Origin: Thecamonas trahens ATCC 50062
Taxonomy: Eukaryota > Protista > Apusomonadida
NCBI RefSeq assembly: GCF_000142905.1
Contig: NW_013657616.1
Location: 131,174-195,173, forward strand
DNA: 64,000 nucleotides
Direction: 5' to 3'
Each line of letters starts with the position of its first letter. Positions within the stretch are counted from its first letter, which is position 1. This document shows, piece after piece, positions 57,954-64,000 of the stretch. A model generated the notes under the pieces. That model was not told the DNA's origin. It did no database searches and worked only from the letters and a program-made list of their open reading frames with translations. The translations under genes were made by a program, and so were the position numbers.

Positions 57954-60900
57954 CTAGCGTGATGGCGGGCGATCCAGACGCTGCTGTCTGTGGCTCATCC
58001 GACCGCGGCGGAGGATGATGGGGGGGCAGTTGGAGACGACAGCGAGGATGCGGTTGGGGTCGGAGGGGTGGGGGATGGAGAGGCCGGCGTGGTTGGCAAT
58101 GGTGATGCGGATGGAGTTGTTGCGTGGGTGGGTGGAGGTGGAGCGGCGGGCGTGGAGCCAGAAGGAGAAAGGGTGGCGGGCGTGGAGGGTGTAGCCGGTG
58201 GGGGAGGGGTGCCACTCGAACGTCTCGCCGGAGTATGAGTGGGAGACCAGGTCAGGCAGCTGGCCATCCGCACTCGGCAGCGCAATCACGCCCTCCACAC
58301 CGTAGGTGTGGCCCTTCAGCACCTCACAGGAGTCCCTGTTCGCGGTGTACCGCATGGCGCCCGTCCTGTCGTCCGCAGCATGCCACACCCGCATCGTGTT
58401 GTCGAGCGACCACGAGACCAGGACAGGCAGCTGGCCATCCGCACTCGGCAGCGCAATCACACCCCGCACATACTCGGTGTGGCCCTCCAGCACCTCGCAG
58501 GAGGCAGTGTCCGCGGTGTACCGCATGGCCTCCGTCCCGTCGTCCGCAGCATGCCACATCCGGATCGTCCTGTCCTCCGACCACGAGACCAGGACAGGCG
58601 GCTGGCCATGCGCACTCGACAGCGCAATCACACCCTGCACATCGCTGGTGTGGCCCTCTAGCACCTCACAGGAGGCACTGTCCGCGGTGTACCGCATGGT
58701 GCCCGTCCCGTCGTCCGCAGCATGCCACACCCGGATCGTGTAGTCCCCCGACCACGAGACCAGGACCGGCAGCTGGCCATCCGCACTCGGCAGCGCAATC
58801 ACACCCCACACATACTTGGTGTGGCCCTCCAGCACCTCACAGGACGCACTGTCCGCGGTGTACCGCATGGCGCCCGTCCCGTCGTCCGCAGGATACCACA
58901 CCCGGATCGTGTTGTCGAGCGACCACGAGACCAGGACAGGCAGCTGGCCATCCGCACTCGGCAGCGCAATCACACCCAGCACATACTTGGTGTGGCCATC
59001 TAGCACCTCACAGGACGCACTGTCCGCGGTGTACCGCATGGTGCCCGTCCCGTCGTCCGCAGGATACCACACCCGGATCGTGTAGTCCCCCGACCACGAG
59101 ACCAGGACCGGCAGCTGGCCATCCGCACTCGGCAGCGCAATCACACCCCACACATGGCTAGTGTGGCCCTCCAGTACCTCACAGGACGCACTGTCCGCGG
59201 TGTACCGCATGGCGCCCATCCCGTCGTCCGCAGCATGCCACACCCGAATCGTGTTGTTGTCTCTCGACCACGAGACCAGGACAGGCAGCTGGCCATCCGC
59301 ACTCGGCAGCGCAATCACACCCCACACATGGCTAGTGTGGCCCTCCAGCACCTCACAGGACGCACTGTCCGCGGTGTACCGCATGGCGCCCATCCCGTCG
59401 TCCGCAGCATGCCACACCCGAATCGTGTTGTTGTCTCTCGACCACGAGACCAGGACAGGCAGCTGGCCATCCGCACTCGGCAGCGCAATCACACCCTTCA
59501 CATACTTGGTGTGGCCCTCCAGTACCTCACAGGACGCACTGTCCGCGGTGTACCGCATGGCGCCCATCCCGTCGTCCGCAGCATGCCACACCCGAATCGT
59601 GTTGTTGTCTCTCGACCACGAGACCAGGACAGGCAGCTGGCCATCCGCACTCGGCAGCGCAATCACACCCTGCACATCGCTGGTGTGGCCCTCCAGCACC
59701 TCCACGCGTTCACCAGTTTGCACGTCAAGTACGTCCACATTGTTCCCACATCCACCAGCAACCAGCGAGCCACCGATGTTGATGACATTGCCGGACGAGC
59801 CATCAAAGCGAAAGCGCTCAGCACCACGATGCGTGACAGGGTCCACGGCTCTCGATGGAATGAGAGCCCCAGACGGGACATCTTCGCTCACAGCAGCAAC
59901 CAGGTCCTTCACCGCTTTGGACGCCTTGCCATAGGCAAGTCGCGCAACGAGCTCGGTTTCGATTTGCGACTTGCCCTTCTCAATGATGTCGCGTGAGAGC
60001 GACAGCGCACGCTCGACCTCGTCAACGTCTTTGGCTCCTTCACGGCCGAGGCGCACAACACAACGCAGATCATTGAGGAGGCCACCAAGCGAGTCGTTTG
60101 CGCGGGCATTCATCCACGGCCAGGAGAGAGCAACGGCAACGGCGGCATGGTTCGCTCCGGCTGCAATTAGGTGGGAAATACCGTGGGTGATGATCCAATC
60201 GGAGGCAGTGCCAGAGGTCATGGTCTCCTTAGCGGACTCTGGCGTGGCGCCAGGCGGAGGCACCCCGGCGACAACGGCGAGGTGACGGGCAGGAAGGGAA
60301 GGGATGTCGTCAAAGCACACCTCTAGCCGATGGCGAATGTACTCGAGGTGCAGATCGTGCAGCTCGACTACGGTTATGGTGCCGCCATCCGTGGCAACGA
60401 CGCGCAGCAACGACGTCTTGGCGAGGGCATCGAGGGCCCTAGCAAACTTGATATTGCTTGCGTCGATCGCGAAGCGGAAGTTGGCGACGTCGATGGGCGC
60501 GTCTGATGGAAAGACGGCGAGCATGGCGTAAATAGCCAGCGCCACCTTGCGGACACGCTTGGGGATGGCACCGCCGAGGGTCCAAGTGATGATGTCAAAA
60601 ATGTGGGCGTACTTGGCGTCCGATCCGCCGCAATCATCGCGGTGCTCATCCATGGCAAGCTCAGTTGCATCTGCGGCGTCCTCAACAGCGTCGTCAAGCG
60701 CAGCCTCGCCAGAAATAGACGAGCCAAGGACGGCGAGGGCGAGGGCATGGCCACGGCAAAAGGTCGCGAGGGAGACGATGCGGGAATCGTTGAGAGCAAG
60801 GGTATTTGCCCACTCAGGTGAACCCTTGGCGAGGTAGTTGCGAAGGACAACAGCAGCGTCGTCCGGGGCAAAGGTACCGAGCTCGATGGAGGAGGCGGAG

Positions 60901-62195
60901 TTGGTAGCAACAGCGGCGTTACGCGAGGTGACGAGGACGGCATGCGGGGCTGCGATGTGGTTGGTAAAGACGGAGGCCTGGCGGGTGGTCCACGCATCGT
61001 CGAGGATGAGCAGGATGCGGGTGCCGGCGGCGGCGAGGGACCGGGTCTTGGCAGCAAGAATGGGTTGGAGGTCATTGAGGCCAGCTTGTGCATCGATTGC
61101 GCAACCGAGGCCTTGCTTCAGGAAGTAGGACATGCGGCTGGCAATGGCGATGGGAGATGTCTTGTCCTCACCGAGAGGGAGCCAGAAGACGGAGAAGACC
61201 GAGGTGATGGCGGGATGGATGGCGACATCGGCAGCGAGTGACGACTTGCCGACGCCACCGAGCCCGTTGACACCGACGACTGAGACGTTGTTCGCACCAA
61301 GAAGGACATTAATGACCGCATCACGAGTGTCAGGGAGCGGGTAGTACTCGGATGGGTTAGGTGGCGGCGGCATGGGCGAGGGGCGGAGGGGTGAACTGGG
61401 AACAATGGCCTGGATGCGGTCGGCAAGATCGTCGACCATGTCAACCACGCTGTCGCGAGCCGGGGAGTACGGAGCGAGGCCGCGCTCGAGGAGGGCGTAG
61501 AGAGTGCCGATGCGGGCGACTTTGAGCTCGGGCGTGAGTTCATCGTGTTCCCAGAGATCCGTGAATCGACGGTTGTTCGGGATCTGCGGCGGGAAAGCCG
61601 CCGCCATGTACGCCAGTAGAGGGTGGCTGGCATCCCGCGGGCCGTCACGCCATGCCGGCGACGAGACGGTCTCGAGCGAGAGCTCAGCGTCGGCAAAAAC
61701 CGGAAAGACCTTGCAAGTCGGATCAGCGAGGGCTGCGTTGGCCTCTGCGATGGCCCACCGTGTGACGATTGAGTACTTTGAGACAACGACGACCACAACG
61801 TGTGAGTCACGGGCAAACCGGGCGCAGTCTGCGGGATCTTGGACAATCATGGCGTCGAGCGACTTGACGTCGAGAAAGACGCGCAGACCGAGGGCAACGA
61901 GCTTGTCGCGGAGCGAGAGCATGAGCCCCTTGTCGTTGGAGCCGTGGCAGAGGAAGACATCGTATGACTTGGTGGAGGACGGCCCGGCTGGTGACGATGA
62001 CGTCGCTTCGATATGCATGTTCTGGGGGACTGCGGAGGAAAGGGTGGCCGAGCTGGCCGAGCTGGCGTTGGCGGTGAGCAGCGGGCGGGGGCGCTTGGCG
62101 GCTCGCCCGGGGTCGGCCGGTTGCCCTGCGCGGCGCTTGGCAGAACCCTGCTGCACTGGGGGGGGGTCCCATGAGTTCCCTGGGGCGGGGTCCAT
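57954..62195 (-). CDS. TIR - NB-ARC (APAF1-like STAND) - WD40 NLR-like receptor
   Basis: TIR: YDVFLCH..DK...GLRVFLD...VVSKYSI.TRWAIAEA; Walker A GLGGVGKS; Walker B LLILDDAW; VTSRN; CRGHALAL (GLPL-like); LHD (MHD-like); nine GH..WD-type repeats. Confidence 0.93.
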   Translation of the reverse strand: MDPAPGNSWDPPPVQQGSAKRRAGQPADPGRAAKRPRPLLTANASSASSATLSSAVPQNMHIEATSSSPAGPSSTKSYDVFLCHGSNDKGLMLSLRDKLVALGLRVFLDVKSLDAMIVQDPADCARFARDSHVVVVVVSKYSIVTRWAIAEANAALADPTCKVFPVFADAELSLETVSSPAWRDGPRDASHPLLAYMAAAFPPQIPNNRRFTDLWEHDELTPELKVARIGTLYALLERGLAPYSPARDSVVDMVDDLADRIQAIVPSSPLRPSPMPPPPNPSEYYPLPDTRDAVINVLLGANNVSVVGVNGLGGVGKSSLAADVAIHPAITSVFSVFWLPLGEDKTSPIAIASRMSYFLKQGLGCAIDAQAGLNDLQPILAAKTRSLAAAGTRILLILDDAWTTRQASVFTNHIAAPHAVLVTSRNAAVATNSASSIELGTFAPDDAAVVLRNYLAKGSPEWANTLALNDSRIVSLATFCRGHALALAVLGSSISGEAALDDAVEDAADATELAMDEHRDDCGGSDAKYAHIFDIITWTLGGAIPKRVRKVALAIYAMLAVFPSDAPIDVANFRFAIDASNIKFARALDALAKTSLLRVVATDGGTITVVELHDLHLEYIRHRLEVCFDDIPSLPARHLAVVAGVPPPGATPESAKETMTSGTASDWIITHGISHLIAAGANHAAVAVALSWPWMNARANDSLGGLLNDLRCVVRLGREGAKDVDEVERALSLSRDIIEKGKSQIETELVARLAYGKASKAVKDLVAAVSEDVPSGALIPSRAVDPVTHRGAERFRFDGSSGNVINIGGSLVAGGCGNNVDVLDVQTGERVEVLEGHTSDVQGVIALPSADGQLPVLVSWSRDNNTIRVWHAADDGMGAMRYTADSASCEVLEGHTKYVKGVIALPSADGQLPVLVSWSRDNNTIRVWHAADDGMGAMRYTADSASCEVLEGHTSHVWGVIALPSADGQLPVLVSWSRDNNTIRVWHAADDGMGAMRYTADSASCEVLEGHTSHVWGVIALPSADGQLPVLVSWSGDYTIRVWYPADDGTGTMRYTADSASCEVLDGHTKYVLGVIALPSADGQLPVLVSWSLDNTIRVWYPADDGTGAMRYTADSASCEVLEGHTKYVWGVIALPSADGQLPVLVSWSGDYTIRVWHAADDGTGTMRYTADSASCEVLEGHTSDVQGVIALSSAHGQPPVLVSWSEDRTIRMWHAADDGTEAMRYTADTASCEVLEGHTEYVRGVIALPSADGQLPVLVSWSLDNTMRVWHAADDRTGAMRYTANRDSCEVLKGHTYGVEGVIALPSADGQLPDLVSHSYSGETFEWHPSPTGYTLHARHPFSFWLHARRSTSTHPRNNSIRITIANHAGLSIPHPSDPNRILAVVSNCPPIILRRGRMSHRQQRLDRPPSR
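58240..59705 (-). repeat. Highly conserved coding WD40 tandem array, 171/174-nt period
   Basis: GHT-encoding GTGTGG anchors at 58306, 58477, 58648, 58819, 58990 and 59161 (171 apart), then 59335, 59509 and 59683 (174 apart). Confidence 0.97.
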
Positions 62196-62840
62196 GGGCA
62201 CAGTGAGAGGGGTGTGCGGAGTGTGCGGTAGGTGTGACGGCGAGGGCGACAGGCGGCGTTTGGGCGATTTTTTGGATATCGGGCGAGTGCCGGGGGAAGG
62301 GCCGGGGGAGAAGGTATGATTATTTCAATGAGAGTTAATTGATGGGGCTGGGCATGATTAGTTGAACGAGAAATGATTGATGTGGCGATGGTGGGGCCAG
62401 GGGGGGTGCATGCAAGCAAGGAGGGTGTGTAGTTGGGCAAAAGAAAAAAGAATGCGTTACTCGGTATTCCCGTGTGGTCCCCCACCACAGTACTAACCAA
62501 GCCTCATGCTGCTTGACTTCCGAGAGCGAGACGGGATCGGGTATTTTCAGCATAGGATGAACGCATTCGATGTATGAGCGTGTACGTGGTAGTCATGTGG
62601 TGGAGGGCGAGGGCGAAGAGCGGTCCCGGCCAGGAGATGGCGATCGGGTGATTGAGGCAAGATGTGGCTGCATCCGGCGGGTTGCGGCTGTGAGTGGGCT
62701 CTGATCTGTGAGTGGGATAGAGGTGCTTGCATTGCTGAGTCTCACCTTGTTCGGTTCCTTCTGTGCGATGTGGCGAGAACCACAGCTCGCCGACGTCCAC
62801 GGCCTCCGTACGTACATGCACAACTGCGCTGACAACCATC

Positions 62841-62960
62841 ATGGACTTTGAATATCAAGGTCACCTCGGCTTTGTTGACTCGATCGAGGATGCGCTCGAG
62901 ACGCTTCCGGAGAGCCCGGCCGTTACCTTCTCCAACAGCGTCTACGGCGTTTGGCGCGGT
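62841..62960 (+). CDS. Possible start of a gene running into an N-gap
   Basis: ATG in ACCATCATGG context; MDFEYQGHLGFVDSIEDALETLPESP with coding-like GC3. Confidence 0.35.
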
Positions 62961-64000
62961 NNNNNNNNNNNNNNNNNNNNNNNNNNNNNNNNNNNNNNNN
63001 NNNNNNNNNNNNNNNNNNNNNNNNNNNNNNNNNNNNNNNNNNNNNNNNNNNNNNNNNNNNNNNNNNNNNNNNNNNNNNNNNNNNNNNNNNNNNNNNNNNN
63101 NNNNNNNNNNNNNNNNNNNNNNNNNNNNNNNNNNNNNNNNNNNNNNNNNNNNNNNNNNNNNNNNNNNNNNNNNNNNNNNNNNNNNNNNNNNNNNNNNNNN
63201 NNNNNNNNNNNNNNNNNNNNNNNNNNNNNNNNNNNNNNNNNNNNNNNNNNNNNNNNNNNNNNNNNNNNNNNNNNNNNNNNNNNNNNNNNNNNNNNNNNNN
63301 NNNNNNNNNNNNNNNNNNNNNNNNNNNNNNNNNNNNNNNNNNNNNNNNNNNNNNNNNNNNNNNNNNNNNNNNNNNNNNNNNNNNNNNNNNNNNNNNNNNN
63401 NNNNNNNNNNNNNNNNNNNNNNNNNNNNNNNNNNNNNNNNNNNNNNNNNNNNNNNNNNNNNNNNNNNNNNNNNNNNNNNNNNNNNNNNNNNNNNNNNNNN
63501 NNNNNNNNNNNNNNNNNNNNNNNNNNNNNNNNNNNNNNNNNNNNNNNNNNNNNNNNNNNNNNNNNNNNNNNNNNNNNNNNNNNNNNNNNNNNNNNNNNNN
63601 NNNNNNNNNNNNNNNNNNNNNNNNNNNNNNNNNNNNNNNNNNNNNNNNNNNNNNNNNNNNNNNNNNNNNNNNNNNNNNNNNNNNNNNNNNNNAGCGCGCT
63701 CTTGACGAAGAACGACGACGTTGCATCGACCGCTAGGGCGGTGGTGCCCAGGCTGCCGTGCGGCTACGGTGGACGAAGCGTGGTCGGCTTGTTGTTTGCC
63801 CAGCCCATGAACGGCGTGGCAGTCGTCATGCCAGCGGTAACGTCGGCGAGGAGGACGATGGCGTTGGCGTCAGCAGATCTCGGCTGCGAGCGAGGGTGGC
63901 AGTCGGCATGCGCAACGCCTCGATGGCAGAGATCAGATTGCGGCCGCGGGGCGTGAGCCAGGGTGCGTGTGCGGGCGGCGGCGATGAGGACAACGAGCGA

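Follow-up and report, generated by a model that had tools for sequence, protein, structure and literature searches.

Does a free-living unicellular relative of animals and fungi carry receptors of the NLR type, with a TIR effector, a nucleotide-operated switch and a repeat sensor in one polypeptide? The question is raised by a gene of the apusomonad flagellate Thecamonas trahens ATCC 50062. Apusomonads are a sister lineage of animals and fungi. On the current view, receptors of this kind arose separately in plants, animals, fungi and bacteria, with free-living protists being little known in this respect. The gene lies on the minus strand of a 64,000-nucleotide stretch of genomic DNA (the window), where a single frame at 57954-62195 runs unbroken for 1413 codons from its first ATG, in agreement with the coordinates and the length of about 1410 amino acids given in an earlier note made from the sequence alone. 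With moderate confidence we read it as a working member of a STAND (NLR-like) receptor family specific to this lineage, whose output would come from a TIR domain cleaving NAD+ (NADase).

The earlier note had proposed a profile search for three domains, and Pfam placed all three in this one unbroken frame above their curated cut-offs: TIR_2 at 36.8 bits (cut-off 28), NB-ARC at 53.9 bits (23.5) and WD40 at 88 bits (27). The NB-ARC motifs that it had named are likewise present, with GLGGVGKSS at residue 311, LILDDAW at 396, VTSR at 422, GHALAL at about 482 and LHD at 612, and the TIR motif WAIAEA occupies residues 147-152; motif and domain residues are numbered throughout from the first ATG (62195). 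NACHT reached 14.9 bits, under its cut-off of 26.7, and no Pfam match to leucine-rich repeats (LRRs) was found in the C-terminal region, which consists of WD40 repeats. An identical protein is on record for T. trahens ATCC 50062 as a 'WD repeat protein' with automatic domain calls.

The glutamate of WAIAEA, Glu151, had been placed by the earlier note at the catalytic position of TIR domains, and each comparison made here puts it there. In an alignment of 21 TIRs, drawn from close and distant Thecamonas paralogues and environmental relatives, it is kept in all 20 that are readable at this position. When this alignment was used as a profile against the PDB, AtTIR ranked first (8.5e-15), followed by RPV1, ROQ1 and RUN1, with Cat1, PdTIR, BtpA, AbTIR and SARM1 ranking lower. 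Glu151 aligned in the profile-to-PDB comparison with the Glu of RUN1 SRWCLDEL and with those of RPV1 and ROQ1, and a single-sequence match to BtpA set it on the Glu of WPAREL. The reference positions of the catalytic Glu, RUN1 E100 and SARM1 E642, lie in helix alpha-C; the AlphaFold2 (AF2) model of the domain has the TIR fold, with a predicted local distance difference test score (pLDDT) of 82 and a predicted template modelling score (pTM) of 0.78, and carries Glu151 in its helix 81-92, which is alpha-C. The Trp of WAIAEA stands four residues ahead of Glu151, the spacing demanded of enzymatic TIRs.

Foldseek searches with the TIR model ranked RUN1, RPV1, RPS4, SNC1 and RPP1 at the top, with a probability of 1.00 to RUN1, RPV1 and RPS4. 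A special kinship with plant TIRs was considered and rejected: in VIA-align comparisons plant, animal and bacterial TIRs were tied at Z of about 9-10.6, the plant domains aligning over the longest stretch (113-127 residues). Glu151 thus sits rightly within a genuine TIR domain, and by analogy with characterized enzymes the domain may act as an NADase.

The ATPase that follows carries the P-loop, the Walker B motif, the sensor Arg of VTSR and the His of LHD. A single-sequence search of the PDB returned plant NRC NB-ARC domains as its sole ATPase matches (1e-8), and phmmer of the ATPase gave no match to APAF-1. The AF2 model of residues 276-799 (pLDDT 87.7, pTM 0.84) superposed best on closed, ADP-bound APAF-1 (3shf, 3sfz and 1z6t), with E of about 1e-14, query-based TM-scores (TMq) of 0.68-0.70 and a root-mean-square deviation of 4.6-4.7 across 519-543 columns, at a sequence identity of about 15%; plant NLRs were covered over about 370 columns. 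From the extent of the APAF-1 fit, the module is predicted to comprise a nucleotide-binding domain, a helical domain, a winged-helix domain and a second helical domain (NBD-HD1-WHD-HD2), which is the arrangement of APAF-1 ahead of its WD40 repeats. The structure prediction that had been suggested therefore yielded both a TIR fold and an APAF-1-like module of four subdomains, in keeping with the APAF1-type NB-ARC described at the outset.

The WD40 sensor of the earlier note was also recovered, with a property that had not been part of its description: variation concentrated at five positions of each unit. Tandem Repeats Finder reported a period of 171 bp in 8.5 copies with 91% matches over 58243-59702, and the region holds nine good WD units of 57-58 amino acids each, preceded by one weaker blade and closed by a degenerate unit, with a mean DNA identity between units of 91%. 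Across 51 WD units from 11 proteins of the family, positions 9, 10, 12, 32 and 35 of the unit had an entropy of 2.1-3.0 bits; the remaining positions reached at most 1.1 bits and mostly stayed below 0.5, with the exception of position 56 (1.7 bits). Positions 9, 10 and 12 follow GHT, and 32 and 35 flank the SWS-x-D-x-T turn. We take all five to fall in the D-A and B-C loops, which presumably form the ligand-binding top face of WD40 propellers. Within this gene, the five hypervariable codons gave a non-synonymous divergence (dN) of 0.68 and a synonymous divergence (dS) of 0.48, compared with 0.05 and 0.08 for the other 53 codons.

The repeats of the HNWD genes of Podospora, and those of numerous other NLRs in fungi, are about 85% identical, evolve in concert and contain few positively selected positions (PMC4986451). 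The Thecamonas repeats show high internal identity, few hypervariable positions and a varying repeat number: this is the repeat regime described for fungal HNWD genes and NLRs, in which conserved repeats differ at a few hypervariable positions.

The anatomy of a sensor-switch-effector module, as the earlier note had it, thus stands, with a Glu-bearing TIR, an APAF-1-like ATPase and a hypervariable WD40 sensor; the gene is, however, not unique. The genome-wide count of paralogues that the note had recommended gave at least 21 NB-ARC and at least 27 TIR_2 matches, and pieces at least 68% identical to the TIR-ATPase part were found on 18 contigs; the gene belongs to a multigene family whose copies recombine. 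Besides the present copy, C59 is unbroken across all 684 query residues, and C22, C97, C67 and C17 are unbroken from query residue ~115-153 to the end. The open frames of the family span 1271-1733 amino acids, so repeat numbers differ among copies.

Comparison with C97 and C22 divided the gene into three parts: the 5' flank and leader up to residue 75 are 85-89% identical in DNA, residues 76-274 (the TIR cassette) show no DNA similarity, with TIR proteins 33-34% identical, and residues 275-833 return to 93.6-96.1% DNA identity. The alternative cassette scores 40.9 bits for TIR_2 and keeps the Glu. Two further observations fit these breakpoints: in a contig of the X5 run, 61374 is joined directly to 61984, and contigs from RNA libraries part from the gene at 61985. 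Judged from these alignments, copies exchange the TIR cassette, residues 76-274, at sharp breakpoints. The cassette of C59 differs from that of the present copy at 2 of 597 nucleotides and the adjoining ATPase by 3.5%, a discrepancy that points to recent gene conversion of the cassette between these two copies.

Such a family bears on the possibility that the protein is an endogenous regulator, serving APAF-1-style stress-induced or developmental cell death, or acting as a signalling scaffold, with no part in non-self recognition. That the ATPase resembles APAF-1 most closely in structure, HD2 and the WD40 context included, would suit such a role. Spread over 18 contigs, varying repeat number, variation at five positions and cassette exchange are, by contrast, the marks of a diversifying recognition repertoire, and we regard the endogenous role as improbable.

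The location of the copies also received attention, as nearly all lie within ~15 kb of contig ends, and the end of the window coincides with the end of the 195,173-bp contig that carries the present gene. A subtelomeric location was rejected: the window contains no TTAGGG-type telomere repeat, and the contig ends beside the copies, six of which were checked, lie within sequence of the family itself (5S, WD or NB-ARC) and carry no telomere repeats, so the clustering at ends reflects assembly breaks. Bacterial contamination was likewise rejected, given the 195-kb contig, the adjoining 5S ribosomal RNA (rRNA) gene scoring 104.9 bits, the many paralogues across the assembly and the neighbours of an environmental relative, which match Thecamonas genes at 53% identity.

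On the preferred reading, that of a receptor with TIR NADase output, the resting protein would hold its APAF-1-like NB-ARC module closed with ADP, with the WD40 propeller or propellers docked. A ligand, which might be a foreign protein, an altered self protein or a conspecific variant, would bind the WD40 face bearing the five hypervariable positions; conspecific non-self is the trigger of the fungal het genes. Binding would free the lock and allow nucleotide exchange and ring-like oligomerization, which would gather the N-terminal TIRs so that their Glu151 sites could cleave NAD+, and the resulting NAD+ depletion or nucleotide signal would lead to cell death or arrest. The domain identities, the intact motifs, the fold of two modules, the hypervariability at five positions, the purifying selection elsewhere and the dynamics of the family are observations; ligand binding, oligomerization, NADase activity and the trigger are extrapolated from APAF-1, plant TIR-type NLR (TNL) resistosomes, SARM1 and HNWD. 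The loss of NAD+ or death of the cell in response to a pathogen or to non-self, which the earlier note envisaged, would follow by analogy only.

Several observations weigh against this reading. At the hypervariable codons dS is raised along with dN, and the comparison is a simple count that does not formally test for positive selection. In the ATPase, the GLPL equivalent is GHALAL, which has no Pro, and HD2 finds no match in sequence to the Pfam family APAF1_C. Stops or fragmentation affect the remaining copies of the family, including C71, C70, C57, C91, C36, C49 and C38. The runs from the organism itself (X4 and X5, 'organism A'), which are of unspecified kind, cover intergenic DNA as well and are not evidence of expression. 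The sole RNA-library matches (X1 and X2) are contigs of 150-235 nucleotides, 95-99% identical, from a 'subsurface metagenome' metatranscriptome; they cover the TIR and NB-ARC parts at 60114-60405 and 61624-62087. A near relative of the receptor family thus seems to occur in the environment and is perhaps transcribed there.

Alternatively, the broken copies could mean that the family is a set of repeats in decay or spread by selfish amplification, of which the present copy would be open by chance or only recently dead, and without function. The duplicated unit does take in flanking DNA and a 5S gene, and the dN/dS of 0.36-0.56 between paralogues in the ATPase module indicates moderate constraint only. 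Against decay stand the 1413 stop-free codons of this copy, at least five other copies that are stop-free over their matched parts, catalytic and nucleotide-binding motifs that are all intact, and repeats that are nearly invariant as protein outside the five hypervariable positions; several of the apparent breaks, moreover, lie at contig ends inside repeats and are assembly breaks. We consider this explanation very improbable.

A different role for the TIR domain is suggested by its relatives within the genome. Outside the family, the cassette is most closely related to the C termini of two TKL kinases of Thecamonas, P0016 and P0018 (41-44% identity); with P0016, an ankyrin-TKL-kinase-TIR protein, the match is 42% over 205 amino acids, reaching past the TIR fold into the extension and including WAIAEA. 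Pfam confirmed ankyrin-kinase-TIR and kinase-TIR frames at L015 (G000:C10) and L016 (C1); taken together with P0016 and P0018, the kinase-linked TIRs are 41-49% identical to the cassette. Kinase-NB-ARC-WD40 genes occur at C30, C15 and C53. With sensor and switch operating as in the preferred reading, the TIR might accordingly serve as an assembly or adaptor domain: the oligomerized receptor would seed contacts between TIRs that recruit ankyrin-TKL-kinase-TIR proteins and activate them by proximity, as in a Myddosome or in fungi where an NLR and its effector have a domain in common, with NAD+ cleavage secondary or absent. TIRs linked to kinases retain the Glu as well, which suits an enzyme and a scaffold equally, and we think the adaptor role unlikely, if less so than endogenous regulation.

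Two further groups of genes were noted in the same genome. The kinase-NB-ARC(-APAF1_C)-WD40 genes, L001 (G000:C30:72712-76293), L002 (C15) and L007 (C53), one of them with an RWD domain, are a second STAND family of this genome, with an N-terminal kinase effector. L008 (G000:C70:67862-71545) encodes an ankyrin-TIR-NB-ARC protein whose TIR is 52% and whose ATPase is 44% identical to those of the present gene, and is an intermediate member linking the high-copy family to older paralogues.

Relatives were also found beyond the genome. HMMER against 1.84 billion representatives gave 1070 matches at E <=0.001, seven of them below 1e-30; five of these seven were checked, and four proved to be from Thecamonas and one environmental (P0013). 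P0013 and P0023, which come from one sample, have the order TIR-NB-ARC-LRR, the domain order of plant TNLs, and P0021 (Tara) is TIR-NB-ARC-TPR. On the 7.9-kb contig of P0013, two neighbours match Thecamonas genes at 53% identity, one with E of 1.6e-111, so the contig derives from an uncultured apusomonad-like eukaryote. Because that organism shares the module, the TIR-NB-ARC pair predates T. trahens and is there combined with an LRR sensor. Remoter matches are bacterial proteins with TIR or SIR2 heads on NB-ARC with WD40 or TPR, and one match is a SIR2-NB-ARC protein of Pirellulales. In the ESM-Atlas, the clusters lying nearest consist of TIR/NB-ARC/APAF1_C(/WD40) proteins of the bacterial groups Cyanobacteriota, Chloroflexota and Verrucomicrobiota. 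A word-based search for close relatives returned Thecamonas proteins only, a search with the best environmental relative returned only itself, and a scan of JGI metagenomes for close relatives found none.

Taken together, these findings allow a broader proposal, which we put forward tentatively as possible, though short of probable: apusomonads may run a combinatorial repertoire of innate recognition, in which a couple of dozen TIR-NB-ARC loci carry hypervariable WD40 sensors (LRR in the uncultured relative), TIR cassettes are reshuffled by gene conversion, and the output is NAD+ cleavage, kinase-TIR partners, or both. If true, TIR-armed NLR-like immunity with a built-in generator of diversity would exist in a free-living unicellular relative of the opisthokonts. 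T. trahens, a culturable marine flagellate near the animal-fungal root, combines a plant-like TIR, an APAF-1-like switch and a self-diversifying WD40 sensor of the fungal type, and offers a tractable system for TIR NADase signalling and STAND recognition in unicellular eukaryotes, for the targets recognized (giant viruses, bacteria or conspecifics) and for module swapping.

The extent of the gene requires separate comment. The earlier note called it intronless: the frame is indeed unbroken, the deposited model implies a 3' intron, and our reading rests on the open frame. Read from a GTG, the minus-strand frame 57954-62201 continues without a stop through 1415 codons. The deposited model, at 1241 amino acids, begins at the second Met (residue 60) and ends in ...KGHTY plus two residues off the frame, an ending that implies a short intron at the 3' side. 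Its coding end (58301) cuts through the middle of a WD unit that carries on in frame, and the unbroken frame is therefore the better 3' model. For the start, M1 and M60 are both candidates: the 59 codons ahead of Met60 stay open, the first ATG is retained in five of seven paralogues, indels in the leader are in-frame, and leader dN/dS is about 1.1, based on few sites. No Pfam family matched residues 1-75 of the leader.

At the other end, homology with the paralogues stops at 58005, ~50 nucleotides short of the stop codon. Relative to the assembly, contigs of X4 and X5 have one G more after 57991 and again after 57562, both possibly single-base assembly errors; the former lies inside the last 13 codons, so the final dozen codons of the frame are uncertain. 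Deposited models of paralogues also end oddly (...CGV, ...QCLL), and the 3' ends of the family's deposited annotations look unreliable. The coordinates of all features are collected in the table.

Table. Features of the receptor gene and its 5' flank in the window, with the environmental relatives on their own contigs
Feature	Position	Strand	Remarks
Whole open frame	57954..62195	-	Start ATG 62193-62195, stop 57954-57956; deposited start is the second ATG, 62016-62018
Low-complexity leader, residues 1-75	61971..62195	-	Basic KRR...KRPRP stretch; coding if M1 is the start
TIR cassette, residues 76-274	61374..61970	-	TIR plus helical extension; unit exchanged among paralogues
Pfam TIR_2 match, residues 80-172	61680..61958	-	36.8 bits against 28; AF2 pLDDT 82
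Glu151 codon in WAIAEA	61743..61745	-	Position of the TIR catalytic Glu; predicted helix alpha-C
Full STAND module, residues 276-799	59799..61370	-	Predicted NBD-HD1-WHD-HD2; LHD 60354-60362; AF2 and fold matches
Pfam NB-ARC match, residues 291-497	60705..61325	-	P-loop 61239-61265; Walker B LILDDAW 60990-61010; VTSR
WD40 region	58155..59798	-	Nine well-kept units, degenerate last unit, weaker front blade; tandem core 58243-59702
Shared 5' flank	62202..62960	.	Part of the duplicated unit; blastn
5S rRNA gene	62449..62568	-	Rfam RF00001, 104.9 bits against 38
Start of divergent gene, MDFEYQGH...	62842-62960, into N gap	+	Kept beside paralogues C71 and C57
Environmental TIR-NB-ARC-LRR genes	L056:2251-5478 (ERZ27290035 k119_959857); L057:430-3990		

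The duplicated unit extends beyond the gene. Upstream, 759 bp of flank, up to the N gap at 62961-63692, recur beside copies of the family at 89-95% identity; six copies span this flank nearly whole, and at least 10 include its 5S segment. The 5S rRNA gene lies ~250 bp upstream of the open frame on the same strand and is followed by a T-run. About 11 further 5S-sized pieces are scattered elsewhere in the genome, and a large share of its detectable 5S copies may be linked to the receptor family. The divergent gene starting at 62842 is also part of the duplicated unit; it matched no Pfam family, and its C71 copy stops after 105 amino acids. Low G+C at 62-64 kb was considered as a feature and rejected, being the N gap.

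The family can finally be set against known systems. Full-text literature searches pairing Thecamonas with either NB-ARC or 'TIR domain' brought up no account of this family. PADLOC gave no match to a defence-system STAND, with weak matches at the TIR level only (PDC-S66, 8.2e-7; ThsB, 2.4e-5). Bacterial TIR-NB-ARC(-APAF1_C)-WD40/TPR STANDs share the domain order and are matched by HMMER at 1e-10 to 1e-15 (P0024, P0025), but their identity is just 25-30%, and the Thecamonas genes have eukaryotic surroundings and make up a large family of paralogues. Plant TNLs (ROQ1, RPP1 and RUN1) likewise have an N-terminal TIR with the alpha-C Glu, an NB-ARC domain and a repeat sensor; their sensor is LRR plus C-JID, whereas that of Thecamonas is WD40 and follows a module with an APAF-1-like HD2. 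APAF-1 has the same NBD-HD1-WHD-HD2 order followed by WD40 repeats, with the LHD His motif, but is a conserved single-copy protein with a CARD, whereas the Thecamonas proteins carry a TIR and are multicopy and hypervariable.

Fungal HNWD/NWD proteins (HET-E and HET-D as well as HET-R) are alike in their WD repeats of high internal identity and varying number with few hypervariable positions, and in forming a paralogous family with exchange between members; HNWD proteins differ in their NACHT domain, HET effector and ~42-amino-acid unit, in place of the NB-ARC, canonical TIR and 57-58-amino-acid unit of Thecamonas. TIR-NB, NB-WD40 and TIR-NB-WD40 proteins have been reported from bacteria and from Chondrus crispus, in which 58 of 61 NB genes are NB-WD40, 23 of them with a TIR (PMC7145615). 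Chondrus thus offers a like eukaryotic expansion of NB-WD40 genes, in another supergroup; the comparison is with its description only, the relevant sections of which do not mention hypervariability or cassette exchange (PMC7145615). TIR-like NADase heads are also known on NACHT-WD40 proteins of animals and a few protists (bioRxiv 10.64898/2026.09.21.753143). TEP1/NWD1 TeTIR-NACHT-WD40 proteins, from eukaryotes of the opisthokont side, likewise begin with a TIR-like NADase head that is followed by a STAND ATPase and then by WD40 repeats, but have NACHT and an extended TeTIR of 200-350 residues, unlike the NB-ARC and canonical TIR_2 of Thecamonas (bioRxiv 10.64898/2026.09.21.753143). The TIR-NB-WD40 architecture is therefore already known, and the Thecamonas gene adds another member; the features of interest are its fungal-type repeat regime, the exchange of TIR cassettes, the LRR-bearing relative and the linkage to 5S genes.

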